Below are positions 5,223 to 64,000 of a stretch of 64,000 nt of DNA, piece after piece. The stretch lies in assembly GCF_006345805.1 (NCBI RefSeq), contig NW_021832004.1:1-64000 (forward strand). The letters run 5' to 3'. Made by a program: the position numbers and the translations under genes. Each line of letters starts with the position of its first letter. Position 1 is the first letter of the stretch. Source of the stretch: Octopus sinensis. Taxonomy: Eukaryota. Below the pieces are notes generated by a model that saw nothing but the letters and a program-made list of their open reading frames with translations, made no database searches and had not been told where the DNA came from.

Positions 5223-5258
5223 GACGACGACGACAAGAACAACAACAACAACAACGAC

Positions 5259-5573: not shown

Positions 5574-5639
<66 letters not shown>

Positions 5640-7020: not shown

Positions 7021-7039
7021 TACGTGGGATTTCTTAATC

Positions 7040-8655: not shown

Positions 8656-8703
<48 letters not shown>

Positions 8704-27629: not shown

Positions 27630-27810
27630 TGTGGGCTAGTCGATGACATGGACCTCAGTATTCATCTGATACTTAATTTATCGACCCGGAAGGGATGAAA
27701 GGTAAAGTCGACATCGGTGGAATTTGAACTCAGAACGTAGCGACGGAGTAAACACCGCTACGCTTTCCGTCCGGCGGGCTAACGATTTTGCCAGCTCACC
27801 GACTTATCGT
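27630..27810 (-). mobile_element. Monomeric SINE (array-type head)
   Basis: Reads 'gatgaaaggtaaagtcgac...gaatttgaactcagaacg...gctaacgattttgccagctc'. Confidence 0.7.
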
Positions 27811-27934
27811 TACTAAATAACAAGAGCTCCAATGCATCAGATCTGTTGTTTACCAAGTTCACGTTTCATGATTGTTAGAGAAATAATTGATGGAATTTGA
27901 TAAACAGGAGTGTTTACTAACAACGGAAGAAGAT

Positions 27935-32655: not shown

Positions 32656-32846
32656 CTCGGATTTTATAATTTTTATAATTTTTATAAGTTTTTTTATATA
32701 TATATATACATATATTTTTGACCTTTTTGTTTATCGCTCGAAGATTGACCGTTTTTTCTAAAGGGCCAATCAAACAAGTCCATTTCTTTTTAAGGTGTAG
32801 CGTTTGTAAGAGTATAGATTGAATTAATATATATGTTCCATTCTAG

Positions 32847-32897
32847 CAAAAACTGTCTGATGAACGGCAACGAGAAACTCAGAGTAACAGATTTTGT
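32847..32897 (+). ncRNA. Minimal type-I hammerhead ribozyme motif, copy 1
   Basis: CTGT-CTGATGA-A-CG(GCAA)CG-A-GAA-ACTC(A)GAGT-A-ACAG. The core is conserved, stem III is palindromic, the cleavage triplet is GUA at 32,884-32,886, and stem I extends. The stem II closing pair is non-canonical (A/A). Confidence 0.65.
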
Positions 32898-33081
32898 TGA
32901 ATTTTCTGCTGCTTAAAATAAAGTATATATATTTATATATATATACATATATTTTTGACCTTTTTGTTTATCGCTCGAAGATTGACCGTTTTTTCTAAAG
33001 GCCAATCAAACAAGTCCATTTCTTTTTAAAGGTGTAGCGTTTGTAAGAGTATAGATTGAATTAATATATATTCCATTCTAG

Positions 33082-33131
33082 CAAAAACTGTCTGATGAAC
33101 GGCAACGAGAAACTCAGAGTACAGATTTTGT
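33082..33131 (+). ncRNA. Hammerhead motif copy 2, missing one A at the cleavage site/stem I
   Basis: CTGATGA at 33,092; reads 'gagtacag' instead of 'gagtaacag'. Confidence 0.5.
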
Positions 33132-33166
33132 TGAATTTTCTGCTGCTTAAAATAAAGTATATATAT

Positions 33167-33203
<37 letters not shown>

Positions 33204-33254: not shown

Positions 33255-33663
33255 ATTATGTATGTTATCAATGTATTATGTGTATATATACATATATATA
33301 TATGTTTTGTATGTATGTAATGTATGTATGTATTTAAGTATGTATTTATGTATGTTACGTACGTTATATCAGGTCGCTCCTGAGTTCTACTGGTATCATG
33401 TCATCCAGTACAACCTGTCGCATGGTGGGGCCGTCGGCGACTAAACTGGCAACCCCACCAGGCGTGCTTGGTGTGGAGGGTGTTGGACATCATGCTAGAT
33501 AAAAAAAAGACCCGTCAAATGTTGAAGGAACTCGTGAACAGTCATTTCTTTATTCACCATATAAGGTTAAGAAAAAGAGGAGACGATAGGAGGAGACAAA
33601 ACAATATTTGGGGTCAGGGGATCGAATGGAACGAAACGTATGAATAGAAATTTAAATATATAC

Positions 33664-34035
33664 GAGTGGCTGTGTGGTAAGTAGCTTGCTTACCAATTAC
33701 ATGGTTCCGGATTCAGTCCCACCGCATGGCACCTTGGGCAAGTGTCTTCTACTATAGCCTCGGGCCGACCAAAGCCTTGTGAGTGGATTTGGTAGACGGA
33801 ATCTGAAAGAAGCCCGTCGTATATATTATATATCTATGTGTGTGCGTGTGTGTTGTGTGTCTGTGTTTGTCCCCCTAGCATTGCTTGACAACCGATGCTG
33901 GTTGTGTTTATGTCCCCGTCACTTAGCGGTTCGGCGAAAGAGACCGGGCTTACAAAGAATAAATCTCGGGGTCGAGTTGTTCGACTAAAGGTGGTGCTCC
34001 AGCATGGCTGCAGTCAAATGACTGAAACAAGTAAA
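33664..34035 (+). mobile_element. Near full-length tRNA-derived SINE (second family)
   Basis: Head 'gagtggctgtgtggtaagtagcttgcttacc...ggattcagtccc', an internal (TG)n tract, and the tail 'ggtgctccagcatggctgcagtcaaatgactgaaacaagtaaaagag'. Confidence 0.85.
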
Positions 34036-34049: not shown

Positions 34050-35745
34050 AGAATGAATGATTAACAAAAAATGAAGCGGAGGATGCGGTCGACACCCTCA
34101 CCCTGAAGACTTTGTTTTTCCCTTTTTTTGTCCTCGCTTAAGCAGGATCTTTCACTCGCAACATACTTGCTACTGACTTTCATCTCTTACGCGACACACT
34201 TTGCAACAGGCATTTCTTTTCCAGCCTTATTTTCCTTTCCTTGTGGAAATGGAAGCAGTTGACTAAGCCTAAGCTTGAGACGAAAATGTCTGTCGCAATT
34301 CCTTTCACTCTCGTCTTCCATACTACCTCTTTCACAACAGCAACTACCGAGAGAAAACAAGCTCGCTCCTCCCTATTCAGGGAGGGCAGCGGAATGATCT
34401 TAATTACAGATTCGTTCGACAGTTGTACTCTTCTCGAATACGACAGTAGGTGTTCGACATAAGCCCAGAGCTCAGTCACCTTGGGGCATTGCACAATCGC
34501 GTGCAGGTCAGTTTCACTGTCCTGCTCGCATCTTGCATAAACCGGCGAAGGCGCACACCCGTGTTTAAAGAGCTTATTTCGAACCGGTAAAGCTCCTCTT
34601 TAACATTTCCAAGCCAGAGACTTTTAGTAATTATCCATAGGTCCTGGCCCGAAGGCTCTTCGGAATAGTTTGGCGAGTCGGTCTTCGTCGAAGCCTAGGA
34701 TTCCCAGGACGTCGTCACACTTGAACTCTACTAACCCTCAATAAGAAAGACGAGGTAGTACCCCTGCTTCCGGCGTTGTCCGATTGGGAGAGAAACACGA
34801 GTGCCTGATGGCACTCTGCTTGCCACGCACCCAACCTCGTTCTACGCTTGATCCATGGGTCCAGTTCAGTAAAAGATGTGAACTATGGAAATACCAGCTT
34901 GACGAACGGAAGCTACACTTGCTCACCGTCCAGGAAAAACCAGGGGTGCCTAAGCTTCAGCGCATGTCTGCGCATTTTTAGCAACGGCATCCCGAGCCTA
35001 CCCTTCAGCGGCTTTTGACAGCAGATTGAGTGCCTTACAAGAGATCTGCTGCCCCTTCACAAGAAGCGGAAGAGCATGTGTTCCATCTTGTTTAACCACG
35101 AATCGGGACATGGCACGACGGTCAGGTGGTAAGTGATTACAGAGGTAATAAACACCTCTGCAACCCTCGCCCTCCCTTTCAAGGACAGCCTCCGCTCAGA
35201 CCAGTCTGAATTAGGAGAGCCACCTGCTCGCACCTCGCTCCAATTTTTCTCTATCTGGAGATCTGGACCAAACCAGACTCCAAGCTTTTTCACCGGCCCC
35301 TCTGTTCAACGTCCCACGACGCTGTCGGAAAGCATCGACTTGCCCCTTCAGGTGCCGATTTGCAAGCCGAACGATTTATCCGGTTAAGTTTCGCCGCTGC
35401 CACCGCTTCGTAATCTCTTAAGCCTCACCTATCTGCTGTAGATGCTCGATCCGAGATACGATGACAGTGGTGTCGTCCGCGTATGCCAAAGTTGACTTTC
35501 TACACCCTAGATCTTGCAGAGCCTCTAACTTCCTCAGCAATGGCTCGAGGGCCAAGACATAGAGAAGCGGAGAGAGAGAGCACCATTGATGTATCGATCG
35601 TTCAATGCAGAGCGGCTCCGAAAAGAAACCGTTTACCCGAACTACCGATTCGATGTCGCTGTATAAAGCGGTGATCTATCCAAGGGAGGTCGGGCCGAAG
35701 CCAGCCACCGCGAGGACCGCCACCAGATATTAATGGTCTACCCTA
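34050..35745 (-). mobile_element. Decayed 5'-truncated Tx1-clade LINE 'Tx1-D'
   Basis: Motifs LGVWFGPDLQIEKNW, RLSLKGRA and WAYVEHLLS...VVWKTRVKG. Confidence 0.85.
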
Positions 35746-35764
35746 TTGAACGCTTTGGATTGGT

Positions 35765-35785
35765 CTAATCTATCCATCTATCTAT

Positions 35786-35862
<77 letters not shown>

Positions 35863-35949
35863 CAACTATCTATCTATCTATCTATCTATCCATCTATCTA
35901 TCTATTTTTCTATCTATCTAACTCTCTATCTATCTAACTATTTATTTAT

Positions 35950-36021
<72 letters not shown>

Positions 36022-36030
36022 GTATCTATG

Positions 36031-36074
<44 letters not shown>

Positions 36075-36144
36075 ATCTATCTATCTATCTATCTATTTTT
36101 CTATCTATCTAACTCTCTATCTATCCAACTATCTATCCATCTAT
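35765..36144. repeat. (TCTA)n microsatellite between Tx1-D and Tx1-E
   Basis: Seen directly in the sequence. Confidence 0.97.
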
Positions 36145-39100
36145 GTACGCTAGACTTAGGTAAGACACTTAGGCAGGGTCCCGGATACTGGAAACTAAAC
36201 GCGTCTTTCCCATCGAGACAGGTTTTCAGAGACCGGATTAGCACACTAGTAAAGAGGGCTTTGACGGGAGCCATCATCAACAACAAATGGTGGTTTGCCC
36301 TCAAGAGAGCAGTAAAAGCAGAAGCGATTAGGTACAGCAACGCACTAGCCATAGATAGAAATAGAGTAGATGGTGAGCTAGTTAAGAAGCTAGAAGAGGC
36401 AATTAGAAGCGGCATCGCATCCGACGTTTTGGCGGCGAGGTTGGCCCTCGACCAACACTTCAACGCCAAACACGAAGGATGTGCTGTCAGAGCTAGGATG
36501 CGTGCTCTAAGGAACGAAGGTGTTGGAGCCGCGAGAGAGGCCCGGGTGGCAGAGGCGCAACAGGGCAACAAAGCCACCATTCGGTCCCTGGTAGATGAAC
36601 AGGGGCGCGAATTGCTCGAGCCAAGTAAAATGTGTGAGGCCTTTCAGCAGCATTTTACCCGACTGTTCGGAACGAGTGGAGGGCAAGAACGTAGGGTGGA
36701 CTTCAGTGCCTACCTACATAGCCTACCACGACTCTCGACAAGAAAGGCAGGGTGCTGCGAAGGTGCCATCACGACGGCGGAAGTGCAGGAAGCGATGGCA
36801 GAATGCTCGAGGGACAAATCACCGGGTTTGGATGGTCTACCCTACGAGCTTTACAATTGTATGCCAGACTTGTTTGGAAATCTCTTGGCGGCGGTGTACT
36901 GCAACTGGCAGCAAAACGGGAGCATTCCTGGTTTTGTGAGCCGAGGAGCCGTAACACTGCTGAAGAAAGATCTAAACAAGGGAAATGTAATAGATAACTT
37001 TAGGCCCATCACTCTGCTTAATGCAGACTTGAAAATTTTGGCCAAGGTGCTAGCCAAGAGGTTGGCGCTTGTCATCGAGAAACTGGTCGACAAGGCGCAA
37101 ACATGCGCCGTGCCAGGCCGGACCATCCATGACAACCTCCACCTGATGCGCTACATCATAAACAGGGTAGTTAACGAACCTGGCATGGGTGGGGCGCTGA
37201 TCAATTTGGATCAATCGAAAGCTTTCGATAGGGTAGACCATCGATACTTGGAGGCGGTCCTCGGAGCGGCTGGCTTCGGTCCCGTCTTCCGCGGCTGGAT
37301 AGCCGCCTTGTACAGAGGCATCCGTTCGGTAATTCGCGTGAATGGACATCTATCGAGACCCTTCGACATCGCACGTTCGGTCCGTCAGGGATGCCCCCTC
37401 TCGGCGCTTCTATACGTATTGACTCTCGAGCCATTATTGCGGAAGCTGGCAACCTTGAGAGGCATCCCGCGAGAACTGGGATGCGGGACGAGCGTGTCTG
37501 CATACGCGGACGACGTCACCGTCATAGTGTCTAGCCACGAGCACATCGAGCAGGTCGGCGAGACACTGAAAAACTACGAAGCGGTGACAGGAGCGAAAAT
37601 CAACCGGGAAAAGTCAGTGGGCTTGCGACTAGGCACCTGGAGAAGCAAGCCCATGCCGTCCACCAGCGCCTCCGTCGTGGGACGCTGGACCGACGGCCCG
37701 GTTGAGTTGCTCGGGGTCTGGTTTGGTCCGGACCTCCAAGTGGAGAAGAACTGGAACAAGATAACGAGTAGGGTGGTCACTCTCGCCCGGCAATGGGCCG
37801 AGAGGAAACTGTCCCTAAAAGGTCGGGCGGAGGTGGCGAACACGTACATCGCGTCCGTCATCTACTACCGCCTGACCGTCGTACCTTGTCCCGACCCTAC
37901 CATCACCAAACTACAACGCATTCTCTTTCGCTTCTTGTGGAAAGGATGCGTCCCGATGGTCAGGCGATCCATTTGCTGTCAACACCCGTTAAAAGGAGGG
38001 CTGGGCATGCCGTGGTTGATGATGCGCAGACACGCGCTGAGACTGCGACATCTCTGGCTCTATGTAGACGACGGTGAACAGGTGTGGTCGCTGTTTGTGA
38101 GGCACGCTTTCCCGCAGCTCGTCTCCATGACCGAACTGCAGTCGTGGATCAAAAAGAGGCCGAGGAAGGGCGAATGGCACCGCGAGTGTCGCGTTGCTCT
38201 CAAGCAACTCTGCCGTCCTGGGTCGACCTTGAGTGACTTCAACACAACCAAAGCATTCTATAGGGGTTTAATGGAGGTACGACGACGAGCTCGGGGCGAA
38301 CCTGGACGTCGACGAGGAGTACCTGACCCGCCTGTTCAGGACGACTTTCGGGCCAGGGCCCATGGACAACTTCCAGAGATCCCTGGCCTGGCAGTGCTAC
38401 CGAGAAGCGCTACCCGTTCGGGATAAGCTCTACAGACACGGCTCGAGAAACACGGGGCCGACCTGCCCGAGATGCGGTCAGAGCGACGAAACCGTTCTGC
38501 ACGCACTCGTGCAGTGTCCAACAATTTCCGACCTGTGGGCTTATGTCGAACAACTGCTGTCACGTGTGGGACGAGTCGGTTTACCAGCTGAGTCTATCGT
38601 CAATATTGTCACGCCTCCTTCCTTCAAACGGGAAGGAAGAGCTATTTTCATCATCCTTGTGGCTATGGCGAAAGAATGTATCTGGTGGACGCGTCTGAAA
38701 GGATTGGAGACAAACACTTTCCTCTCTGGTCAATCTCTCATCAACTTCTTCAAGTACCACTTGAAAAGGAAAGTGAGAGTAGAGAGGCAAGTTTTGTCTA
38801 GCGAATGTTTTAAAAAAAGATGGGTGAATGTAGCAAGAATGGCACGTATGAATGACGAAGCCACCTTGAGCATGATCCTATGAACCCAGAAATTGAAAAC
38901 AGAGAGTTGCTTATTCGCAAAAAAAAAAAAAAAAAAAGAAATATAACATGTGACTCCATTGACCGAGGTTACCGTGGTCTTTTCTGTAGGCTTTTCTTTC
39001 CACGGGTAAACCTCACCTGTCCTCCCCTTTACACTTCATATTGACATTACTGTGATAACGATCCCTATTGATAAATTTTTTATTTTTTTTGCTCTCCCCC

Positions 39101-39256
39101 TTTTTTTAACCCCCCTTTTTTGTCCTCTTTCTCTCCTTTTACGATCCCTTTTGATCGAAACTCCCCCTTCCTTTTTTTTTTTAAACCTTCAAAAGAAAAG
39201 CTCTACCTTGTAATTTGTTCTATCTGTGTGCAGCCCTGTGTGGCTAATAAAGAAAC
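36145..39256 (+). mobile_element. Young 5'-truncated Tx1-clade LINE 'Tx1-E' inside a (TATC)n tract
   Basis: The 721-aa ORF (36,261-38,426) and the 173-aa ORF (38,362-38,883) join with one frameshift near 38,275. RT motifs RQGCPLS and YADD, and CPRC...HA..QC. Ends 'cagccctgtgtggctaataaagaaac'. Confidence 0.92.
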
Positions 39257-39275
39257 ATATCTATCTATCTATCTA

Positions 39276-39332
<57 letters not shown>

Positions 39333-43670: not shown

Positions 43671-45365
43671 AAGGAGGAAAACCTTTTGTTAAAGTTCTAC
43701 TGTGCCCTTTTTCCGGTGTCTTTTATACCTCTCATGGTTCCTTCTGATAATGTCCCCAAGGATCCAGCAATAATTGGGACTATCTTCACCTTCTTCATTT
43801 CCCATAACCGAGGTTTTTCGTACTTAAGATGGTTGTATTTATTTATTTTATCGCCTTCCTACATGACTGTTCGTGAGTCAAAGGAATGTGGAGCATCAAC
43901 GATATAGCATATGCGGTTCACCACCACTATGTCCGGTCTGTTAGCTCTAGCACTTGATCTGTTTGGATTAAGAAATCCCACGTGATTTTGCTAGTCTCCG
44001 ACTCCACCACTCGAACAGGATAGCCAATCTCACCCAGAAATGGGTAGAGAAGAAATTGTCCCCGAAAGGTTGGGTGGAGGTGGCGCATGCATACATAGCT
44101 TCCCTCATCTATTATCACCTGACAGTAGTCCATTGCCCTGCTTTGAAACTGACCAAGCTAGAACGCTTAATATCCCGCCTTCTGTGGAAAGAACGTCTTC
44201 CCCTCGTCATACGGTTCATCTGCTATCAACAGCCACAGAGTGGAGGACTGGGCGTGCTGTGGCTAATGATGCACAGATGTGCGCTGAGGCTACAATATCT
44301 CCAGCATTTTCTTAACGTTGAACAGATGTGGTCACCGTGTGTCAAGTAGGATTTTCTGCTGCTCATCTCATTGACGGAGTTATAGTACTCAATCAAACGT
44401 AGACCCAGAAAGGACGCGTGGAACGTGGAGTGTCAGCAGCGCTCACAGCTTCCTGTCAGTCGGGCAGCGCGGTCAGAGGAAGTTCCACTGCGGTGTTCTA
44501 TAGGGGATTAGTAGCGGGTAAGAATCACGTCGTCCTTGTGGAAACTGGGCGACGGAAGGGATCAACTAACTGATCTTTTCCGGAGGACTATCAGGCCGAA
44601 TCGTATGGATAACTTCCAAAGTTCTATGGCCTGCCTGTGCTATCGGGGAGCTCTGCCGGCTCCAAACGATCTCTGCAGATACAAAAGTGCTGTCAGTCTG
44701 GTTTGTTCGAGGTGTGCGCAGAACGACAAAACCGTCCTGCACGCACTCATTCATTGTCTGAGCATTACTGACTAGTGCAGCTTTGTCAAACGGCTGTTAT
44801 CGCGTGTAGGACAGATCCGGTTATCATCTGAGTCCATCGTGAAGATCGCCACCCTCCTTCCTTCCTTCCTTTGGCCAGGAAGAAAAGACAGTTTTCCTCT
44901 GTCTGGTGGCTATGGTGAAGGCGGTGGACGAAACTGAGAGGACTGAAGGCGAATGCTTTCCTCTTGGGCCAACCCTCATCGACATTTTCAAGTTCCACTT
45001 AAAAAGGTAAGTGAGGGTAGAGAGGGAAGTTCTGCTCCCCAGTAAATTTGATGAAAGGTGGGTGTATGTGGTGAGGATGGTCCGAGTAAAGGGGCCTGCT
45101 CTGAACTTTCTTTTGTAAACCGGAGGGGTTGAGAAGGAGAGAGGCGCCTTCTGAGTAGCACTGGCGGTCGGAATAACCAGGTAGTGTGGGGGGTCTGCGG
45201 TTGTCCCTGTGAGGAGCTAACCCCTTTTGGGGAATTTTTATTGTTCAATTTCTTTTTGTTATTTATTTTCTGTTACTTATTGCATACACGGCATTGTTCA
45301 ACACCCCACTTGTCCATTTGTGTTGTATTGTCCCTATTTTTATAAGAAAGGTCCGATATAAAAAA

Positions 45366-45414
45366 GTATTACTATTATTACTATTATTATTATTACTATT
45401 ATTATTATTATTAC

Positions 45415-45467
<53 letters not shown>
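45366..45467. repeat. (TTA)n microsatellite
   Basis: Seen directly in the sequence. Confidence 0.97.
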
Positions 45468-45922: not shown

Positions 45923-46074
45923 GAGGTAAGACCTGTTTTGAACGCTCCGTCAGTTTGAATTTTTCTTGTGTATTTTTGAAGGTTGTTGACTGTTATGTAA
46001 GTGTTTTTGTTTTCTAAACCCCTATTGGTGTATAGAAGGGATTCTTTTCCACTAAGAGTTCTGACGGTCAGTAC

Positions 46075-46996
46075 CTATTTCTTTACTACCCACAAGGGGC
46101 TAAACACAGAGAGGAGAAACAAGGACAGACAAACAGATTCAGTCGATCATATCAACCCCAGTGCGTAACTGGCACTCAATTTATCGACCCCGAAAGGATG
46201 AAAGGCAAAGTCGACCTCGGCAGAATTTGAACTCAGAACGTAACCGCAGAAGAAATACTTATTTCTTTACTACCCACAAGGGGCTAAACATAGAGGAGAC
46301 AAACAAGGACAGACATAGGTATTAAGTCGATTACATCGACCTCAGTGCGTAACTGGTACTTAATTTATCGACCCCGAAAGGATGAAAGGCAAAGTTTACC
46401 TCGGCGGAATTTGAACCCACAACGTAACGGCGGACGAAATACCTATTTCTTTATTACCCACAAGGGGCTAAACATAGAGGGGACAAATAAGGACAGACAT
46501 AGGTATTAAATCGATTACATCGACCTCAGTGCGTAACTGGTACTCAATTTATCGACCCCGAAAGGATGAAAGGCAAAGTCGACCTCGGCGGGATTTGAAC
46601 TCAGAACGTAACCGCAGAAGAAATACCTATTTCTTTACTACCCACAAGGGGCTAAACATAGGTGGGACAAACAAGGACAGACATAAGTATCAAGTCGATT
46701 ACATCGACCTCAGTGCGTAACTGGTACTTAATTTATCGACCCCGAAAGGATGAAAGGCAAAGTTTACCTCGGCGGAATTTGAACCCACAACGTAACGGCG
46801 GACGAAATACCTATTTTTTTATTACCCGCAAGGGGCTAAACATAGAGGGGACAAACAAGGACAGACATAGGTATTAAGTCGATTACATCGACCTCAGTGC
46901 GTAACTGGTACTCAATTTATCGACCCCGAAAGGATGAAAGGCAAAGTCGACCTCGGCGGGATTTGAACTCAGAACGAAATACGGCAGACGAAATAC
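46075..46996 (-). mobile_element. Five tandem SINE bodies (184,184,184,184,186 bp); the head lies at 52,117-52,177 beyond Tx1-B
   Basis: Junctions at 46,258, 46,442, 46,626, 46,810 and 46,996. Outer TSD at 46,059-46,074 and 52,178-52,193 (2 mismatches). Confidence 0.9.
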
Positions 46997-49900
46997 GAAT
47001 TTCTTTATTGCCCACCGGGGGCCAAACATAGATATGGACAGTACAACTGATGGGATCAGGGAATCGATATGATTTTACATAAATGTGACATTAAAAATAA
47101 AATACAATACATAAAAATCGAATGGAATACACAGTACAAAAACAATACAAATGAAGCGATGATCAAGTTACGCTCCGATCGCACAAGCCCCGATCTACCG
47201 CTGATACCTTTTTATTTTTCCTTTTTTTTTTTTTTTTTCCTCGTCTATTCACACGGTTCCTTGCATGCACAACACTCGTGCAACATACTTCCATCTCTTT
47301 TGGAACGTACACTCTGACAGACACCTCTTCTCCAGCCACAGTTTCCTTTTCAAATGAAAAGAAAAAAAGGATCGTAAATTGTCACCAGAGATAAAGTTGC
47401 CTGTCTTAATTCCTTTAATCCTAGTCTTCCATACAGCCTCTTTTGCTATTGCTACAACCGTGAGAAAACAATTCTTACCTTCGTTCGTTAGAACTCCCGG
47501 TGGGTCAATTTTTATAATTGACTCAGTCGACAGCCGTACTCTTCCTTCGCCGGACAACAGATGTTCAGCATAAGCCCACATTTCAGTTATCTCCGGACAC
47601 TGAACAATAGCGTGAGGGACGGTTTCCCTGTCCCCCCCCGCATCTTGGACAGGTCGGCGACTGACGTTTACCATGTCTTGCGAGCTTATCCCAAACGGGC
47701 AAGGCACCTCTGTAGCATTGCCAGGTTAAGGACTTTTGGAAGTTGTCCAACGTTCTCAACCCGAATGTACGATGAAACAAGCTGTCCAGTTGAATAAATC
47801 CGAGACCTAGAGTCGACCCCAGGCCATCGTCGCATTCAGACTCTACCAACCCACTATATAAAATCCGTGTGGAACCCTCACCGCTGGCGTTGCCCGAGCG
47901 CCGGAACAGCAAGAGGGCCTTACGGCACTCTTTATGCCACTCACTCGACCTCGGTCTACGAGAACACCAGGCTTCCTGTTCGCAAAAACTCTTGAACTCA
48001 GGGAACATTTGTCTGGCCAGCGGAGACCACACCCGTTCACTATCCAGGAGAATCCAGAGGTGCCTCAACCTCAACGCATGTCTGCGCATCATTAACCAAG
48101 GCATCCCTAAACCTCCATTTAAAGGCTTTTGACAGCAGACAGAGCGTTTCACAAGTGGAGACCTGCCCTTCCACAAAAAGCGAAAGAGCTGTCTCTCCAA
48201 CCAACAACACTGTCTGAAGGCATCGACTTGCCAACCCAGGTGCCGAGCTGCAAGCCGACCGACTTTTCCTGGTTAATCTTTGCTCCTGCTACCTCCTCGT
48301 AAGCCTCAATAGTCTTACCTACTTCACGTAGGCGTGCCACTGTGGTTACACTGATAGTGATATCATCCGCGAAAGCCGTAAAAAACTCCTCTAGTCCTGG
48401 TTCTCTCGGGATGCCACTCAACCTTTGCAGTAATGGCTCGAGAGCCATCACATACAAAAGTGGTGAAAGCGGACATCCTTGACGAACCGAGCGTCTGATG
48501 CAGAACGGCTTCGAAAGGAAACCGTTCACCCGAACTATCGAGTCAATGTTGTGGTACAAAGCGATAAACCACCTGAGGAAGCCAAGGCCCAGGCCAAACC
48601 GCGCAATTACAGTCGCTAGGTATCGATGGTCAACCCTATCAAAAGCTTTAGACTGGTCCAAATGCACCAATGCCCCACCTTTGCCAGATTTATTACCAAA
48701 CCTCTCTATGGTATAGCGAATAAGATGGAGGGTATCCTGAATGGTTCTGCCTGGGATGGCACATGTCTGTGCCTCCCCGACTATACCATTCGCGACACGC
48801 GCCAACCTTTTTGCTAGAACCTTGACCAAAATCTTCACTTCTGCGTTTAACAGAGTGATGGGCCTGAAATTCTCTAGAACGTCCCCCTTGTCCGGGTCCT
48901 TTCTGACCAACGTCACTACTCCCCGGCGCACAGATCTGGGGATAAACCCATTCTGTTTCCAGTTCGCGTACACGTCAGTCAGTAGTTGCCCGAACAAGTC
49001 TGGCATACATTTATACAGCTCGTACGGAAGACCATCAAGTCCCGGTGACTTACCCGCTTTACAATCGGCCAAAGCCTCCATCACCTCCTCAGGTGTGATT
49101 GGCCCTTCGCAAGACTCCGCATCCGACCCCGAGAGGCACGGCAGCCCTGTAAGAAAGTCCTCGAGGGCTCTCCCACTACCAGGACCGCCGTCACCCCCGA
49201 ACAGCTGGGCGAAGTACTCCCGAAAGACCTCACACATTTTCTCGGGTTCGTTTATCAAGACACCATTTTGATTCGTCAAAGACCGAATAGAGGAACTATT
49301 TCCTTGCCGAGCTTCCACCACTCGGGCCCATCCAGCGGCTTTGATTCCTTCACTTCCCATTGCACGTAACTTAGCTCTGGTAATACTTCCCATGTGGTGG
49401 GCTTCAAGATGCTGGTTTAACTCCAGTCTTTTCACCCTCGCTTGGTCTGTATTACCAGTCCTCCAGGCTTCTTCTAGTTCCTTAACTAGACCATCTCCTA
49501 TTTTACGTCCCTTCTTAGCTAAACTTATGCTAAACCTAATAGACTCATATTTGATGGCTCTTTTTAGGGCGTGCCACCATTTGTTATTAATGATGGTACC
49601 TGTTAATGCCCTCTGTATTAACATCTTGATCCGCTTTCTGTACTCCTCAATCGCCAAAAGGGACGTATTGAGTTTCCAGTAGCCAGATCCCTGTCTATGC
49701 AACTTATCTACCGTCAGTTTACAGGTAACCATCTTGTGGTCACTGTAGCTGACTAGAAAAAACTGTGGACACTCAACTATGGACTTATCTTTTTCTCTAA
49801 TTAAAATCCTATCTAGATATGTTCTGGTAGACCCGTCACTATTTGACCACGTCCACTGTGGAGTGTTCGAGTGCTCCAACCTATATGGATCTGCTAGCTG

Positions 49901-52116
49901 AAATTGACTTAGCAGATCCCGAAAGCCTGGGTTACATTTTCTGTTCATGTTCGAGTTTGAGCCAACACAATCTGTGTGTGCTGCACATATTGTATTAGAG
50001 TCTCCTAACACTACTAGTGAATGCGACGTGGCTAGGAACTTTCCTAGGCCACGAAAATATTCAGTTTGCGGGCCAATAATGTTTGGTGCGTAAATAGCGA
50101 CCAGCCTGATTGTCTTGCCACAACTGAATGTCAAGTCGAGAACGACCAGCCTGCCTTCTGGGTCAGAAAAAAAACAACTTTTTCTCGGCTACCCGGTTTC
50201 TTTTTAGTAGGACCAACACCCCACCCCCACCTCCCGCCCGACTCGGAGAAACGTATTTCTCGTAGCCGTTCAGGAGGGGGAGCAGATCTCTTGGCCCCTT
50301 CACCCGGGTTTCCGTTGCAACAATTACATCCAAATTTCTCCACCTGATGTCATTCAGAAAGCGTCCTTGCTTCCAGCTTGACAACAGGCCATGAACATTT
50401 AAACAACCAATGTGAATAGCCATCACTTACCTGTTTAATTAGGATTGTCGGGTGGAGGGGGACCCTCCACCTTTTTTTGATCCAGGGTCGGAGGTGGACG
50501 GTCTTGGGAAATAGATTTGTCAAAATCCCGTCTCACCACCGACACAGAATTATCAGGTGGAGGGGGAATCTCCACCTTTTCCTTTCTCGCGGGATCGGAG
50601 CTGGTAATCCCTGAAATATCGACTTGTTAAAATCTAATCTCAATGAAGATACAGTCTTTCTGTACTTATTTGTAGAATTCTATAAGTCTTATTTGAGACT
50701 TCATATATGTCGTATTGATAAATTCCTCTGAAAGGTTATCAATTTTTTTTACAGTCTTTATGAGTTGAATGTCTCTCATGAGCTCAGTATCTTTAGTGTA
50801 TACGGCTATTATGCCTTTTTCTTCTTTTTCTCTTCTGGCAGTCTTTTTGGTCGTTGTTCTGTAGTAGTCGCCGCTCTCAGTTGAGTTGCTGGTAGTTTCC
50901 TTTGTTTGTTGTTTTTTCTCATCTGTTTCTTCTTTTTCATCTTCCTCTTTGTCTTTTTTCTCTCCTTCCTCCTCTTCCTCATTTTCCTTGCAGTTCCTTC
51001 GAATGTGGCCTAATTGACTACATAAAAAACATCGAGATTTTCGGCTCTCAAAAACACCACGAGGTTCTCCTCCCCTACCTCAATTGTCTCGGGAATTGCT
51101 TGAATTATTTTAGGGTCCGCTTGAATAAGGAGATTAATGTTTTGACCATCCCAGTGTGTGTTTTCGGTAGCGGTAGCCTGGAGGAGAGTAATTTTTTCTT
51201 CCTCTTTGATCAGGACTGCCGCCAACAACCACATAGGGTCCACTTCCGTGGGACCATTGTAATTTTATTCTGGACGTTCTCATCCCATATATAGGAGATA
51301 AGCTCCACGTCGTTGGTTTTCAGCGTTTCTACTGAGTTCTTTTGTGCTATTTCTTATTGGTGAACCTTACTTCCACCGTTCCGAATTTCTTGCCTCTTCT
51401 CAGATAAACTATGTCGTCCCATATTGGCTTTAAGCACTTTTCTATTTCTCTTCTGACATTCTTTCATTTTTTTCTTTTTTGTAGACAATATGTTTTGAAA
51501 ATTAAAGTTTTTTGGTTTTTTTCTTGTAATAACTTTTCCGGAGGTTCAATTTTCACAACGTTGTCAGTTATTTTCATCATTTGGCTATATTTCATAAAGT
51601 CGCTCTTATTCGTCGACAGCAGCCAGATTCCACTCCCAGCTGCCAACGCAAAACATTTTTTCCCATTTTTGGTTCTGTCTGGATGCTAGGCACATCAATT
51701 ACTCTTTTCGACACAGTGCCTTTGTTCTCTGGCAAAGTCGGAAACTCTTCTGGTGATAGTTCTGACGAGCTTTCAGACACATCTCCAAAAAAATCAAATA
51801 TATTATCTATTCTGCTATTCTTTCTTGTAGCGAGGGAAACCCTTATTTCCCTGTCTGTAGTTGGCTCCTCGCCGGACATGTATTTCCTCCTCTCAACAGG
51901 AGAAACAAGTATTCTGCTCCAACGGCAGGCTCTATGCTAGACGACATTCTTCCCCCTAAAGGGGGAATGAACAACGCGTGCTACTACAAGCACTAAGTGT
52001 TTTCAAATAAAAACTCCAACAGTTAAGTTATTCAACAGTTTAACAAGAAAAACACAGTTATTAACAATATTAACACCAAGAAGAAACAGCAACTTTTACC
52101 ACGAACACATGTGTGA
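46997..52116 (-). mobile_element. Full-length Tx1/L1-clade LINE 'Tx1-B' (5,120 bp) inserted inside the SINE
   Basis: ORF1 pieces lie at ~51,947-50,900 with the CCHC knuckle CFLCSQLGHIRRNC. ORF2 runs from 50,426 (GCLNVHGL...ETRV, APE), through a 661-aa EN+RT segment (RQGCPLSP, FADD), to a C-terminal CPRC...H...C. It has a few frameshifts. The 12-bp TSD is at 46,985-46,996 and 52,117-52,128. Confidence 0.92.
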
Positions 52117-53099
52117 CAGACTAAATACGGCTACGCATTTCGCCCGGCGTGCTAACGTTTCTGCCAGCTCGCTGCCATTCTGACGCCCAGTACCTCAACG
52201 ATTTATCTTCTGAACAGCACAAAGAACAGTACCAACACCACTAACTGCACCGGCACCACCATTAACACTGAAAAAGAAAAAAGTCAAGAAAACACCGCTG
52301 TGAACAAGAAAAACAACGAAGAAAATACAAACACAAACGCAAATGACAGATCCAATAGACACGGTTTCGCTTCTGCAGCGAAACAAACAAGAGAAACGAT
52401 AAACGTCACATTAGAGGATTTAAAAAATTTCAAGGGGCTCTTAGTGAGACAAGGTAATAATGTCTCTCTAATACCCCGAAAGAAATTGTTCTGGACACAA
52501 ACAGAAGAAGCATTACGTACAAATGTATAAACAAACAAAAAAAGTCATTGGAACGAGCAACACAAGAATAACTGGAACTAATTCTGAAACCAATTTGGAA
52601 GAAGAAAACATAAGTGACACGTGGAAAATGGTTCGGTACTGTGGAAGTGCGCTACGCAAAGGAAGAAGCAAGAAAACATTCCACAGTGCCACTATTTTCA
52701 GAGACCTTATCGTCGTGCCGACATGTCTTGGTCGGCATGTTAACAAAATTAATATCGGCCGGGGGGGGGAGTACCCCTGAATTAAACATATGTTGGCTGA
52801 TGGCCGCTGTCTTCTATGATATAGAGGATACGGCCGCGATCCTGGAGGTGTATAAGTTGCACCGACAAAATTGGACGGGTCAGGAGTTGGAACGCTTGTC
52901 CAAATGGAACAAGAGGACCTCAAGTCTATCCCTGACTCCTTAAACTCACCGAAGAGCACGAGACTACGCGTAGCTGTGGAGGGCAGGAGGCCGAGGTGCT
53001 ACTTTCGTGGAAACAATCAGCACCTTAACATCGACTGCCAAAATACAAGGAGATGCGTCGAACGCTACAACCGACACCAGAAAAAGGGACATCTCCTAA

Positions 53100-53130: not shown

Positions 53131-56100
53131 CGGAGTACCCCCCCCCACCCCCGCCACCGGCCGGGGTACCACTACCCCGTCGCAGCAGTAACACCACCAC
53201 CACAACTACTGTAGCAGTAGCAGCAGTAACAAATGAACACCAACAAAACCAAAAGTCGGAGTCATCCTCCTCCCGACCAAAACAACTCGGACTGTTCGAG
53301 TAACGAAGTCGAGAGGGGGGGGGGTGGCAAACAGTTTCCCCCCCCACCAAAGAGAAAAAAAGAAAAATCTACTGAGACAGTAGAAGAAAAAGTGGGGAGG
53401 CGCTAGTAGACACTGAACGTCCCAACAGCGGCAACACCACACTCAACAGCCATAACAAACAACACACCTCCACCAGCACTATCACCTCAAACACAAACTC
53501 CACCACAGATTCTACTAGCACCACAAACTTCACAGCTATTGATACAGGCAATAATAGATTTAATTACATACTCAAGAGACAATACAAACACCACCATGAC
53601 AGAACTCACCACCACCACCACCACCACCACCACGCATACAAATATTAAAAACCACACAACAAATTTACAAACCATAAAAGCAACATTTCCAGATGCTGTG
53701 GGGTGGCTCCAAAAGACTTTTACAAAAAGAATATATAAAAACCTAGGGAAACATCCACATGAAGTGTACCATCATACCAGAGGACAGTGGTAAGAGGTGC
53801 TCTTCTCCATTCTATAGTTATTTTAACTTGGTGATGCTAAGAATAGTTTTATAGAGGCCAGGGGCCTCGGGTCACCTTGGAAACAACGTCAGCTTTTAAA
53901 TGACCTGAGGTCACTTACTGTAAATGTTGCAGTCATTAGTGAATCCAGATATCCGACCCACGGAGATTTTTCTTTCTCCGTGTCGGCCTGGGTGGTGTAA
54001 TAGTAAAACTGTGGTGCTTTTCTGGAAGGGTCCGGATTTGAATATAAGGGCAGTCTTCCTGGATCAGAAGGTAAGTTGGTGGTCCTAGATGTCAACAGCA
54101 GTGACGGCTGGGCTTTCAAACTGGTGGCTGACAGGGGCAGGGTGGTCTGATTACTTCAAGCGTCTGGAGTACGTCTCGAACATTCGTACTAGTAGGGGAT
54201 TAGAACGCTGTCTTAGATGGATGTTTCGATTGCGTGGGAGTTTCTTATAAGAGATGTGGGGTGCAAAAACCTCAAAAATCTACTCAGACGTTTTTCCATT
54301 GTCTGCCGGGTACCGACTAGATTATCCGAATGTCCCAATGTGGACTTGAACAACCGCATCTGGTTATCTAGATCGTATCTAGATAGAGTATTGTGTAAGC
54401 CAGCGGACAGGATATCATCGGGTGTTCATAATTTCACATGGTCAACTACACAGACCACAAATTTGTGATCTGTACAGTCGACTTGGATAGGCTTCATAGA
54501 CATGGTCCCGGTTACTGGAAGCCGAAGGTGACGTGTCAAGCTTACAGTGACCGGATTAGCGAATTAGTTAAGCGGACGTTGTCGGGGGCAATCGTCAACA
54601 ACTGTTGGTTTGCTTTTAAAAGAGCAAATTAGAGAAGAAGAATTAATTAGGTTTAGCAAGGCGTTGACGATAGGACGAATAGAATAGAGGGAGATGCATC
54701 GGAACTGACGTGTTGGCGGTGAGGTTGACCCATGACCAATATTTCGACACCAAACACGAAAGCCGCGGAGAGGGAATGATAGCGTAATGATAGGCCCGCG
54801 TGACGGAGGTGAAAAGTGACAATAAAGGCACCATTCGGTCTTTGGTGGACCAGGAAGGACACATGGTGTTCGAACCGAAAGAGACGGGCCATTAAATTGC
54901 ATTGCTCGGAATCTAGTTTGGTCCAGACCTTCAGGCGCAGAAAAAACTGGGACGAGGTGACGAGGAAGGTAGCCAGCCTTACACAGACATGGGCCTATAG
55001 GGAGCTGCTTCAGAGCGGTCGAGGCGAGGAGGCGAATGTGTACATCGCATCTGTCATCGATTACCACTTGACCGTCGTCCCTTGCCCCGTTTGCTGGTTG
55101 ACCAACCTGGTGCGTTTACTCTTCCCTTTTCTGTGGAAGGGGCGCGTTCCACTGGTCAGGCGCTCCATCAACTGTCAACAGTCGCTGAATGAAGGGCTGG
55201 GCATGCCGTGGTTACTAATTCGCAGACATTCATTAAGTTTGCGGCATCTCTAGCGTTTCCTTGGCGGTGAGCAGGTGTGGTCACTGTTTGTCAGATACAT
55301 TTTTCCACAGACCGTCCCTTTGACTGAGCTGCAAACCTGGATTAAGCGTAGACCGAAGAGGGAGTGCTTGTCACAGCCCTCCGCCAGGCGAACAATGAAG
55401 TCGGTGTAGTTTCACTCTAGCGTTCTATAGAGGGCTAGTGGAAGGATATCGCGACGACGTTCTCAAGGAAACTCTAGGCATCGATGAAGATCAACGAAAT
55501 GGTCTGTTTCGGAGAACTTTCTGGCCTAGGCCTATGAATAAGTTCGAGAAGTCCCTTGCCTGACAGTGCCACCGAGGGGCGCTGACTGTTTGAGATAAAC
55601 TTTACAGGTACGGAAGTGCCGTCAGCCAGGCCTGCTCGAGGTGTGCCCAGAATGAGGAAACCGTTCTACACGCCCTTGTTCAGTGACCGAATATTGCTGA
55701 CCTCTGTGGGTTTATGTCGAACACCTGCTGTCACGTGTTGGACGGATCCGCTATCAGCTGAATCCATAGTGAGGATTACCCTACCGTCCTCCTTTGGCTG
55801 GGAGGAGCAGGCAATTTTTATTTGTTTAGTGGCTGTAGCGAAATCGGTAGTATGGTGGACTCGTCTGAAAGGGCTAAAGTCAGAGACCTTCCTCTTTGGC
55901 CAAGCCCTTACCAACTTTTTCAAGTTTCATTTGAAATGGAATTTGGGGGTGGAGAGGGAAGTGTTGCCTTGTAGTAATTGTGTTGAAAGGAGGGTGAATG
56001 TTGGAAGAATGTCCAGTGCAAAAAGACCAATTCTTTGCGCGCACCTGTAAACAATAAAAGGGATTTAAAGAAGGCCTCTTGCTCTGTTGATCAGGCACCC

Positions 56101-56289
56101 GTGGCCTTTGTGGGGTTTTCCACGAGGATCTTAAGCGCCTCCCCTATTAGGTGTTTTTTTATTTGTTTGATTTACTTGCTATATATATTGTTTACACGCC
56201 GTAAAACCCATTGTATCTTCCCGTTTTTGTCTGTTATGTTGTTGCATGTCATTCAATGTTATTTTATGTGAGTGATCATGGCTAATAAA

Positions 56290-56334
56290 ATAATTTATTA
56301 CTATTATTATTATCATTATTATTATTGTTATTGC

Positions 56335-56389
<55 letters not shown>

Positions 56390-56400
56390 TATTATTATTA
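56290..56400. repeat. (ATT)n microsatellite
   Basis: Seen directly in the sequence. Confidence 0.97.
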
Positions 56401-56582
56401 TCCTCACTTTTATCATCACAATATTATCACAATATTGATATTTATTAAAGAGTAGAAAATAATCTATTAATTATTTCTCATTATTCAAAAATAATAACAC
56501 TATACAACGTGAAACAGTTCCACCACCATTACGAAAAACAACAAAAGACAACAGTGATTTATTTATTTTCTTCTTCTTACAG

Positions 56583-60369: not shown

Positions 60370-60460
60370 GGATTGACGAACCTCATCACAAAGGTAAATA
60401 GACAATACGAAAAGCATTTCGTCTGGCGTGCTAACGATTCGGCCAGTCCGCCGCTTTAGC
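60370..60460 (-). mobile_element. SINE head fragment
   Basis: Reads 'gcatttcgtctggcgtgctaacgattcggccagtccgccgc'. Confidence 0.6.
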
Positions 60461-62174
60461 ATTGCAGACAACATATTAAAATTAATTCCGATCTATTCTA
60501 CACGCTTCCCTGAACTGTTCCAGAAAAAATCATTTTTTCCAACTCCAATGCGGACTAATTATATTGTAAGACATATACCCCGGACTCCTTAACAAGAATC
60601 GAAACCTCGGTCTTCACGCTTGTTATATTGTTTCCTTGCCATTTGTGTTAGAATCCATTCGTTTTACCTATTTAATTCGCCACCATTTTAGATGAGACAG
60701 AGTGTAATCTTGTTAATCCATTCCGATCTATTGTCAATGGTCTGACTTGACTTTAGCACTGCAATAAATTCGAGATACCAAGAGAAAAATGTTCTCTTTC
60801 CTTTGCAACTTCCAAACAGTTAACTATGGCACCTTCTCGCGAGCTTTGCCCCATTTACCCACCTCAAGTTAGGGTTCACTATTAACAACTGCCATGGTAA
60901 TAGATTATCCATAAAAACTAACTAAATTTTGTGTTTACTTCCCATTCGTCGCACTTGCAGAACCGCGTAAGTAAAATCTACAGTAAGTGTGAAATACCTT
61001 TCAGCAGTTCTTTGCAGTGCATCCAGAAATATTATCTACGCATTGCACAGTCTTTCGCCAACTTGTCACATCTCTACGTGTTACAAACAACTTGCTACAT
61101 CGTGCCTGTTACGCTTTTCCCGTTACAATTATACCGTTATACATATAAAGACATGTTTGAAGTACATTTCGAACGTAGCTAGGATCTTTATAAACGTATG
61201 TCCCTTCATATCTGAGGCCTTGTGTTATTACTAGAAATAACTGATAGTAAATAAAACTCAACATATATTAAAGAAGTAATGACTTCTTATATAAAATTAT
61301 CTTATATATAAATAGGTAACTCGATTGTATTAAGGAGATTAGGATTTCTTTATTAATATTAAAGAAACCACGAAAGATATTAAGACCATCAGAAGAATAA
61401 GAAACTATTTTATTCCATTTCAGAACTTTGGAACGATTTCAAACAGTCAAATACACTGGACAAGATTAACTCTGTGGGATGTGGTATATATTTTTCGACT
61501 CTAATTATTTCGTTGACAGTAAGACCCTATTTTTGTTTATTTTTTGTGTTTTTCGTTTCTGTTTCTGGTTTCTCATCTTTAATTCATTGATCTCTAGTTT
61601 TGCCACAAAAAATTAAAAAATAAATAAATATCTCTTTCTTCTACATCACATGAGTATTTCTACTTAGAAACTTAATTCTTAATTAAATATATTAACAGTA
61701 AAATTATTATATCCATCCAAAAGAATGTTGTAAAACAACCCACAAATACATTTAAAATCTGGCAAATGGATTAATATTAATCTCCGTTGTCATTAAAATT
61801 CTCAACACGCTTCCTTACTAATCTGCAAGAAATACCTCAATACATCTCGCCGGTAATACGAGAACCACTCCCTCCGAGACACCCAACAACATTCTCATTC
61901 TCATTCTCCCGTCATACATGCTATTTCACCAGCCAGATCCCACATCAATTATTATCCCCAGTCCTTCCTTTCTAGATTATACAACACTCACGAACTCACT
62001 CCCTACTCACACTAACCTAAAGATGTCCAAACGGAACATGAATAAAATCGATCTATCGAATCAATAGGCCACATCTATTCGTTTCCCTTGTACTTTGTCA
62101 GACTAGAGCAATAATTTAATTTATGCTCTTATATTTATTGTGTTTCCTCTTTCCAATTTTTCTTTCTCTTGCAG

Positions 62175-62365
62175 AAAAAGAAACTAATGATTTGACAGCT
62201 TATTCAACATTTTCCTTCAAACAAAATCCAAATCTCTACCTTATAACCGAGGCCCAAATGGATGCTCACTCGGTTCTGGATTGTTCCCGTTTATGTATGA
62301 TATCTTCTACATGTACTGCCTTTTCATATACTAACACTAAGTGCCTACTAAAGAAACTGATCTGA
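62175..62365 (+). CDS. PAN/Apple terminal exon C1 (phase-1 acceptor to TGA)
   Basis: Acceptor ttctcttgcag|aa. Translates KETNDLTAYSTFSFKQNPNLYLITEAQMDAHSVLDCSRLCMISSTCTAFSYTNTKCLLKKLI*. AATAAA at 62,811. Confidence 0.75.
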
Positions 62366-62938
62366 ACTTTAATTGAATTCACCCAAAAAGTACTTACTTC
62401 TCCATGAAATGTGAGCAAGACTTCAACAGATCAGGTTTGCTAACCTATTTTGCTTATTTTTTTGTGTGCTTTTTTCTTTTTATTGTATCTCATATTTAAT
62501 TTATTGATCTTCTGTCTCCAGTTCTTGTCGAAAAAATAAGAGAAATTAATGTCGCTTTCTTCTTCATCGCATTATGTCTTCTAATTAGAGTCCTAATTCT
62601 TAGTTAAATATATTAGCAGTAAATTTATAATTCCTCTCCCCGAGATAGCCAGCCACATGCCCCTTCTCCTTCTCCCGTCATACATGCTATTACACCAACC
62701 AGATCACATCCCGCATCAATTATTATCCCCAATCCTTCCTTTCTAGATTATACAACACTCAGAAACTCACTCCCTACTCTCACTACTCTAAAGATGTCCA
62801 ACGGAACATTAATAAAATCGATCTATCGAATCAATAGTCCATATCCATTCGTTTCCCTTGTACCCTCCAATGAAGAGCAATAATTTCATTTATGTTGTTA
62901 TATTTCTTGTGTTTTCTCTTGCTTTTTTTCTATTGCAG

Positions 62939-63129
62939 AAAAAGAAAATAATGATTTGACAACTTATTCAACTTTTTCCTTCAAAACAAATCCATATCAC
63001 AACCTTATTACCAAGGCCCAAATGCATGCTCACTCGGTTCTGGATTGTTCCCGTTTATGTTTGATATCTTCTACATGTACCGCCTTTTCATATACTAACA
63101 CTAAGTGCCTACTAAAGAAACTGATCTGA
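62939..63129 (+). CDS. PAN/Apple terminal exon C2 (tandem duplicate of C1, intact)
   Basis: Acceptor ttctattgcag|aa. Translates KENNDLTTYSTFSFKTNPYHNLITKAQMHAHSVLDCSRLCLISSTCTAFSYTNTKCLLKKLI*. AATAAA at 63,241. Missed by the ORF track because it has no in-frame ATG upstream. Confidence 0.75.
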
Positions 63130-64000
63130 ACTTTAATGGAATTCACCCAAAAATTACTTCTCCATGAAATGTGAGCAAGTCTTCAACGGATCACGTTTGC
63201 TAATTATAATTATATAAGATAAAATGTGTGTTTCTTTGTGAATAAAATCAATTTAATTCAGTTATTCTTTTGTTGATTAATTTTAATTGCTAACGTTTTT
63301 CGTTCTAAATTAGTCTTATCTTAGAACGTGATTGCTAATTTGAGTTTTAGCTCTGGTCTCTCGGAAACTATTTTAAGCTGGCTGATCTAAACTGCTTTTA
63401 TTAAGGATTATAAAGCGAAATTAAAATAAGAATCTTTTCTTTTTCTCTATGGACGAAAGTTTGTGTTTCAGCAACTTATTTGCAACTTATTAGTACAGGT
63501 TAAACGAAGAATAGGTTAAACCAAAACACGAAATCAATTATACGGAAAACGAAATCTAATAGAAATTTGATCGTAAACTCAGAAGCCCCACGATTTCTTT
63601 CAGGTTATCGAAAAGTTAAAATAGTTTTTTGCTGTGAAAAACATAAATTGCAATGCTGACCATACATGTCGTAAAATGTTCCTTTTGTTTTCATTTGTTT
63701 AGTTTTAGATTAATATTGGATTCTTTGTTAATAGTTTCTTGAAGTGGACATTGTGTTGCAATTCTTTATGGATTGGTGAGATCGATACGGTTAATGCTTA
63801 GTTTGAAGATTTGTGTGTCGACATCTGTTGGGAAAATTGGATCAGGGATTGCATTTCAGGCGATTAATGTTCTGGAGCAGTGGAGACCCAATCGCTGTGT
63901 TGTAGCCCAGTCAGCATTAGTTTTAAAAAAGCACGGGCAAAATTTTAAATAAATAATAATTTGACTTTTGATTTAATAAATGAAATTTGAAATCAACTTC

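Follow-up and report, generated by a model that had tools for sequence, protein, structure and literature searches.

In a 64,000-nt window of the Octopus sinensis genome (positions 1 to 64,000 of contig NW_021832004.1, assembly GCF_006345805.1), a long interspersed element (LINE) is inserted at exactly the position at which the units of tandemly arrayed short interspersed elements (SINEs) join one another. This hints, on the basis of one LINE and two array loci, at a favoured insertion site within the SINE for the enzyme that mobilises it. The SINE is ~234 bp long and consists of a 49-bp head, 12 bases that we call T (GTATTTCGTCTG, with the variant form GTATTT(A/C)GTCTG) and a 172-bp body. We propose that the arrays grew by recurrent target-primed reverse transcription (TPRT) at T with homology-guided resolution of the 5' ends, followed by unequal crossover, and give this reading a probability of about 0.5. 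The LINE-bearing locus lies in one arm (arm B) of a ~10.4-kb inverted duplication (121-10530 on the plus strand versus 57096-40424 on the minus strand, ~91% identity) that brackets ~30 kb, and its counterpart in the other arm (arm A) is empty:

52178-52193, minus strand: duplication flanking the founder SINE of arm B, 5' copy, GTACTGGGCGTCAGAA, matching 46059-46074 and the arm A pair
52129-52177, minus strand: SINE head (H) of arm B, carrying the 5' arm and loop of a 12-bp hairpin of which T is the 3' arm
52117-52128, minus strand: T, upstream copy of the LINE duplication, GTATTTAGTCTG
46997-52116, minus strand: LINE, L1/Tx1-type, 5,120 bp, in the same orientation as the SINE
46985-46996, minus strand: T, downstream copy of the LINE duplication, GTATTTCGTCTG, also the first 12 bp of unit v1
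46075-46996, minus strand: head-less 184-bp units of array 3 (v1 46811-46996, v2 46627-46810, v3 46443-46626, v4 46259-46442, v5 46075-46258)
46059-46074, minus strand: founder duplication of arm B, 3' copy, GTACTGACCGTCAGAA
4279-5084, plus strand: arm A locus, the LINE-empty paralog of array 3 (duplication 4279-4294, head 4295-4343, units u1-u4 4344-5068, duplication 5069-5084)
4344-4355, plus strand: T in arm A, the first 12 bp of u1

The LINE is located between the SINE head with its T and the first unit of the minus-strand array. When the LINE and one T were deleted in silico, the remaining sequence was colinear, base for base, with the empty paralog at 4230-4460, which proves true insertion of the LINE, accompanied by duplication of 12 bp of the target (13 bp with a shared C included). 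A preliminary description of this DNA had placed the LINE between SINE head and body with a duplication GTATTT(A/C)GTCTG, and the empty-site comparison bears this out. The insertion at T is a genuine TPRT-type event and, since arm A lacks the LINE that arm B carries, it took place after the arms were duplicated. Apart from the LINE, indels and the number of SINE units (four versus five) distinguish the arms, and no orthology between individual units could be made out. Just 3' of the LINE, v1 reads GTATTTCGTCTGCC-GTATTTCG-TTCTGAG (46971-46996), with GTTACG in the other units; the insertion may have left this incomplete second T as a scar.

Tandem Repeats Finder (TRF) identified three arrays in the window, each with a period of 184-188 bp:

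4343-5071, plus strand: array 1, 4 units
22716-23200, plus strand: array 2, 2.6 units as scored
46072-47032, minus strand: array 3, 5.2 units

A BLAST search with one full element located the ~49-bp head only at the 5' end of the arrays, once in each, giving the arrays the structure head-(T-body)n. The nine internal junctions of the three arrays all read ...GAAATA(G/A)^GTAT(T/C)T.. (the caret marking the join) and fall at a single SINE position, in agreement with the earlier prediction that one breakpoint would dominate, here within the window. The LINE shares its nucleotide position and its orientation with all nine, and while GTA occurs six times in the SINE, only the GTA of T serves as a junction or insertion site. 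The same description had counted three arrays: three are indeed present, but as arrays 1 and 3 (at 4.3 and 46 kb) sit inside one inverted duplication, they are paralogs of one locus and the independent array loci number two, so three independent arrays were rejected. The second locus is made up as follows:

22656-23286, plus strand: array 2 locus, independent of the arms
22656-22665, plus strand: duplication, 5' copy, GTATATGAAT
22666-22715, plus strand: head
22716-22899 and 22900-23087, plus strand: new-type units
23088-23276, plus strand: resident unit, old-type and C-rich
23277-23286, plus strand: duplication, 3' copy

Array 2 provides the most informative view of how units were added. The possibility that it is 3'-truncated at 23200 was rejected, as its last unit continues with an old-type tail to 23276. 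Its order is head-T-new-T-new-T-old, where the resident unit (23088-23276) belongs, by its C-rich module and its tail, to an older subfamily that the 27.6-kb and 17.6-kb solo copies also represent, and the new and resident units differ across the whole region between core and tail. Since the resident belongs to another subfamily, the upstream units cannot be local copies of it; instead, they were added between the resident's head-T and its body, and the make-up of the array fits addition at T. The same SINE superfamily is also represented by older copies, solo or partial, at 17642-17858 (plus strand), 27596-27822 (minus strand) and 60380-60456 (minus strand). In these older copies the C-rich module replaces the new-type 3' region, and the one at 60.4 kb has an internal deletion.

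Every array, taken as a whole, occupies a non-SINE site and lies between the two copies of a single ordinary duplication, of 16 bp for arrays 1 and 3 and of 10 bp, exact, for array 2. The former is (G)GTACTGACCGTCAGAA, whose copies occupy 4279-4294 and 5069-5084 (arm A) and 52178-52193 and 46059-46074 (arm B), and the latter is GTATATGAAT, at 22656-22665 and 23277-23286. Both independent arrays start with exactly one head; a single head and one flanking duplication per array would be expected if each array began as a full-length founder and its 5' ends were resolved by homology during later extension at T. The founder duplications and T all begin with GTA, and the duplication of the 27.6-kb solo copy possibly does too (GT(A)). 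This common start suggests that the enzyme recognises a short nick motif (N^GTA on the top strand, the caret marking the nick) rather than the 12 bp of T.

The first ~88 nt of the SINE form one long imperfect hairpin, not a cloverleaf (22668-22757 and 4300-4385), and the 90-nt stretch folds at -38.2 kcal/mol with a z-score of -3.2 (-2.8 for the paralog). The apical stem of 12 bp pairs CAGGCGAAATGC with GTATTTCGTCTG across the loop GTAGCT, with T as its 3' strand. An old SINE copy at 60.4 kb retains a perfectly complementary 5' arm of this stem, and the G-U pairs in its apical part suggest that the structure is important at the RNA level. A weak alignment-based fold of the SINE tail (-1.5 kcal/mol, four pairs) was dropped as evidence for a conserved tail hairpin. 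Sequences resembling a B box (GAGTTCAAATTCC) and an A box (TAGCACGCC) are visible in the SINE. ARAGORN detected no tRNA in the head and Rfam gave none at gathering or E-value thresholds, and a tRNA origin of the head was not adopted.

The LINE and the SINE also share their 3' ends. The LINE comprises ~1.7 kb of 5' untranslated region (UTR) and degenerate open reading frame (ORF) 1 region, a broken ORF2 and a 3' UTR ending ...GGCCCCCGGTGGGCAATAAAGAAATTC, with the following parts:

47252-50426, minus strand: ORF2, in four frame pieces (50171-50426, 48149-50170, 47631-48200, 47252-47635)
47213-47240, minus strand: A-rich tract after ORF2
46997-47040, minus strand: LINE 3' tail, homologous to the SINE 3' tail

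The last ~43 bp of the LINE (...TGTCCATATCTATGTTTGGCCCCCGGTGGGCAATAAAGAAATTC) are 79% identical (34/43) to the SINE tail (...TGTCCCCTCTATGTTTAGCCCCTTGTGGGTAGTAAAGAAATAG), which ends ...TAGCCCCTTGTGGGTAGTAAAGAAATAG. Both elements end a few bases past an AATAAA-like motif and their genomic copies have no poly(A). The same type of tail also ends other L1-like LINEs of the window (at 39259 and ~33543), as well as LINEs and a homologous SINE in contigs of Argonauta hians. The SINE can thus be assigned, by its sequence, to the tail-sharing class and, because LINE and SINE have a common 3' tail, it is plausible that it borrows the enzyme of this LINE group in trans.

ORF2 is interrupted by at least three frame disruptions. 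Once stitched, it gave matches to Exo_endo_phos (3.9e-9, an apurinic/apyrimidinic (AP)-type endonuclease), RVT_1 (2.7e-28) and zf-RVT (3.4e-6), and its closest solved structure is human L1 ORF2p (2.7e-49). The 1.7 kb upstream of ORF2 holds only short broken ORFs with no Pfam match of any kind even at E<=5, and hence no detected ORF1 domain. The public proteins nearest to a 661-aa ORF of the LINE are unnamed or 'hypothetical' products of Argonauta hians with 46-59% identity, none exceeding 59%. The LINE is therefore a decayed L1-superfamily element, for which 'Tx1' and 'full-length' serve only as unverified labels. L1-like LINEs of Octopus have been annotated as L1-Tx1 (PMC13282606), which is only a lead for the clade of the present LINE.

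Taken as a mechanism, recurrent TPRT would begin with the enzyme of the LINE group nicking the bottom strand just 5' of GTA, with the GTA of T being favoured. Copying of LINE RNA at T would yield head-T-LINE-T-body, the arrangement at 46985-52128. If SINE RNA were copied at T in the same orientation, the cDNA would run from the tail through the body into its own T and head, and the upstream end of the target (...head-T with its 3' hydroxyl or, within an array, ...tail-T with its 3' hydroxyl) could then anneal to the homologous stretch of the cDNA. Second-strand synthesis would begin at the annealed T, for a net gain of one head-less T-body unit of 184 bp, and repeated rounds would produce head-(T-body)n arrays whose units would be reshuffled afterwards by unequal crossover and gene conversion. 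Nicking at T, as unit addition requires, is demonstrated directly by the inserted LINE. We infer the remaining components, namely a preference of the nick for T, homology-guided 5' resolution and an origin of the units as separate retroposition events. More broadly, a family of L1/Tx1-type LINEs in an octopod genome might prefer to nick one site, beside the apical loop of the hairpin of its own tail-sharing SINE, such that every SINE copy would be a landing pad for SINE and LINE alike and same-orientation, homology-resolved SINE insertions would build growing head-less arrays; we regard this as unlikely and offer it only as a tentative proposal.

Several observations weigh against recurrent TPRT at T, and some of them favour other origins for the arrays. 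Array 3 contains a dimer duplication, in which v1 and v3 are 96.2% identical and v2 and v4 96.7%, and its self-identity is 93% at an offset of 368 compared with 90% at an offset of 184. Units v1-v4 have variants in common that neither v5 nor arm A carries, and v3 resembles a mosaic of the units next to it. DNA-level duplication and conversion thus clearly also shape the arrays. Aside from the dimer, identity within arrays is neither higher nor lower than between arrays, and the units therefore give no independent dating. In addition, T and the 3' flanks of the arrays share 4-5 nt (GGTA for array 1 and TGTAT for array 2), matches typical of breakpoint microhomology.

These features, together with the fact that arrays 1 and 3 are a single locus, would be expected if the arrays were DNA-level tandem duplications, started by microhomology and enlarged by unequal crossover, with the LINE at the junction by coincidence or because it is a GTA site. 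Microhomology-mediated duplication could indeed have started array 1, but array 2 is beyond its reach, since its upstream units are of another subfamily than the resident and are not duplicates of it. Likewise, a satellite built by unequal crossover alone fits array 3 in part, through its dimer, and fails for array 2 with its resident of another subfamily. A DNA-level origin also has to account for an identical junction at two unrelated loci and leaves the position and orientation of the LINE to a chance of only ~0.002-0.006 (for a random insertion in the 234-bp SINE), a value that must be read with caution given that the coincidence was spotted post hoc and that one LINE and two array loci allow no real statistics. 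We consider such an origin quite unlikely overall. The preliminary description had named microhomology-driven slippage, if it explained the arrays in full, as fatal to its model; array 1 is compatible with slippage and array 2 argues otherwise. Its proposal that SINE copies, 5'-resolved by homology, stack at T is favoured by the mixed subfamilies of array 2 and the single head of each array, and has to yield some ground to the dimer duplication of array 3.

A second concern is that the junction might have arisen once and been copied. No TTTT terminator is present anywhere in arrays 1 and 3 or in the new-type units, and therefore RNA polymerase III (Pol III) could transcribe whole arrays and spread such a junction. 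Each array might then stem from a single retroposition event, through Pol III read-through of a multimeric master with initiation at an internal tail, or through a template jump by the reverse transcriptase, with no more than a loose N^GTA nick preference. One ordinary non-SINE duplication around each whole array and one 5' head, as Pol III transcripts would give, agree with this scenario, and LINE enzymes are known to switch templates (cited in Kojima 2015, PMC4494074). Against it, two composite masters (new x4 and new-new-old) would be needed for two loci, and the units of arrays 1 and 2 have no positional orthology. Template jumping is known from the 5' ends of RNAs, but T lies in the interior of the SINE, next to the apical loop of a stable hairpin. 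Finally, the arrival of the LINE at exactly T, in a pre-existing array and after the arm duplication, would be left as a coincidence. An origin in single events strikes us as unlikely.

Further points concern how specific the enzyme is. Since the arrays have their own ordinary duplications at non-SINE sites, the founders did not need T, and the specificity would be a preference and not a rule. The RNA 3' end (...GAAAUAG) and the primer end at T (...GAAATAC) are alike, not complementary. Priming by pairing of the RNA 3' end with the nicked T was rejected on these grounds, and priming would therefore proceed through a read-through tail-T RNA or without annealing. The tail is common to the LINE group, and the LINE at 36145-39259 matches the SINE tail at 32/42 positions (76%), so that 79% versus 76% does not mark the LINE at T as the partner of the SINE.

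In its strongest form, the idea would be that the endonuclease is sequence-specific for the 12-bp T in its own passenger SINE and that the two have co-evolved, with SINEs as an expanding safe harbour. All of the points in favour of recurrent TPRT at T would also favour this form. Relatives in the window look target-associated (36145-39259, with (TCTA)n on both sides), and Tx1 is among only two AP-endonuclease clades with site-specific families (PMC13295347, PMC4494074). By contrast, the founder SINEs and probably the 27.6-kb solo copy lie outside SINEs, and their duplications share only GTA with T. The window holds a single copy of this LINE family, the one at T, and twelve T copies beyond the LINE-flanking site, none of which carries a LINE; the tail does not single out this LINE either. 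Strict specificity of this kind is, in our view, very doubtful. The earlier claim that the LINE enzyme cuts a site in its passenger SINE is thus upheld as far as the TPRT-type insertion at T and the shared tail go, while the founders at non-SINE sites indicate that cutting is not strictly T-specific.

The closest precedent for recurrent TPRT at T is the Tx1-Mar/SINEU-3 system of crocodilians, in which Tx1-Mar LINEs and SINEU-3 share a target in Mariner-N4_AMi with a ~16-bp duplication, and in which tandem SINEU-3 copies have been ascribed to sequential insertion (Kojima 2015, PMC4494074). In both systems one target position within another repeat serves an AP-endonuclease LINE of the L1/Tx1 kind as well as a non-autonomous SINE, duplications are long (~16 bp there; 12 bp here, with 10-16 bp for the founders) and SINEs stack head to tail. 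The SINEU-3 target, however, is in an unrelated DNA transposon, whereas here it is inside the SINE itself. SINEU-3 tandems are whole SINEs separated by the duplication, while the units described here lack the 49-bp head and T is both duplication and unit part. In addition, the specificity of Tx1-Mar and SINEU-3 is based on hundreds of copies and here on one LINE; the criterion applied to a target-specific family in that work was the same sequence in >20% of flanks (Kojima 2015, PMC4494074). By analogy, stacking may work as in SINEU-3, with a different product.

Members of the Tx1 clade often have defined multicopy targets, including Tx1L in Tx1D (Xenopus laevis), Keno in U2 small nuclear RNA (snRNA) genes, and Kibi and Koshi in microsatellites (PMC4494074), and among AP-endonuclease clades only Tx1 and R1 include site-specific members (PMC13295347). 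These share with the present case an L1-like LINE at one defined position of a multicopy sequence, sometimes another transposable element, but none of their targets is the LINE's own tail-sharing SINE, and Tx1 membership is only a label here. LINE/SINE pairs with common 3' tails are known from Ohshima and Okada and from Kajikawa and Okada 2002 (as cited in PMC4758252 and PMC4494074), and the homology of the last ~43 bp of our SINE to a LINE 3' end is comparable. The usual tail-sharing pairs occupy dispersed sites, and neither a SINE-internal landing site nor a head-less array is known to have been described for them. For site-specific elements of the R1/R2 type, the passages cited in PMC4494074 describe a co-transcribed target sequence that anneals at the target. 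This resembles the 5' resolution proposed here, through homology between cDNA and upstream target, and the possible priming by read-through tail-T RNA; R2 differs in having a restriction-like endonuclease and a ribosomal DNA target, and our proposal comes from sequence only. SINE-derived satellites formed by unequal crossover are matched by the dimer repeat of array 3 and the four versus five units of the arms, but not by the identical junction at unrelated loci, the mixed subfamilies of array 2 or the LINE at the junction site. No description of this LINE/SINE pair or of head-less SINE arrays was found in the cephalopod-repeat literature searched, with Repbase and Dfam outside the search. The difference from known systems is a site within the LINE group's own tail-sharing SINE; with the target in that position, a head-less array with the duplication as part of the unit would follow.

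The conversion of dispersed SINEs into tandem or satellite-like DNA is usually credited to unequal crossover, with no first step specified. If real, a landing site inside the SINE would supply a concrete, retroposition-based first step from SINE to satellite-like DNA, and would extend the target range of Tx1-type elements (DNA transposons, snRNA genes, microsatellites) to their own passenger. Array growth would then be readable from the order of subfamilies within arrays, and LINE and SINE would form a self-reinforcing niche. In octopus genomes, SINEs account for roughly a tenth or more of the sequence (PMC13282606, PMC8967140). If the preference for T fails genome-wide, the locus would be an ordinary nested insertion of a LINE in a SINE array.

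Related elements were also observed in Argonauta hians, where homologous SINE body and tail sequences and related LINE tails are present. Neither T nor the head of this SINE was found in the Argonauta hians loci L002 and L003 or in L001. Two full-length homologous SINE copies stand directly head to tail in L002 (14824-15313; BAAFZT010000001.1). Their body and tail are 71-75% identical to the window SINE, their head is different and they are 77% identical to each other; the pair is therefore a tandem placement of diverged copies, with heads kept. A LINE relative in L003 (~12790) ends ...AAGAAATCTAT, followed by (CTAT)n. A protein search with an antisense ORF that spans a junction gave no candidates for SINE arrays elsewhere, and exact 27-mers and 35-mers of the SINE had no matches in metagenome and prokaryote genome contigs.

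The window contains further L1-like LINEs, several of them next to microsatellites. The region 35768-39330 includes a 5'-truncated L1-like LINE (36145-39259, plus strand) with 70% amino acid identity to P0001, flanked by (ATCT)94 at 35768-36144 and by (TCTA)4(TCTG)13 at 39260-39330. By its flanks, this element would either have inserted in a (TCTA)n microsatellite or carry a (TCTA)n tail, and the (TCTA)n repeats to its left and right agree with a target-associated habit of the LINE group. An L1-like fragment in the opposite orientation (34150-35789, minus strand) has its truncated 5' end against the microsatellite at 35768-36144 and its terminal ...GTGAATAAAGAAATGA at ~33543, and its 3' UTR features a different SINE-like insert (~33660-34020). 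Two more L1-like fragments, at 44011-45366 and 54174-56294 (arm A counterparts at 5650-6969 and 870-2332), pass at their 3' ends into (TAT)n/(TTA)n microsatellites (45367-45465 and 56295-56401).

Two other repeats were noted in the window. At 32694-33187, a 237-bp unit that is unrelated to the SINE is repeated 2.1 times with 97% identity and has AT-rich simple repeats on either side, and a direct repeat of ~575 bp with 88% identity occupies 61868-62443 and 62634-63203.

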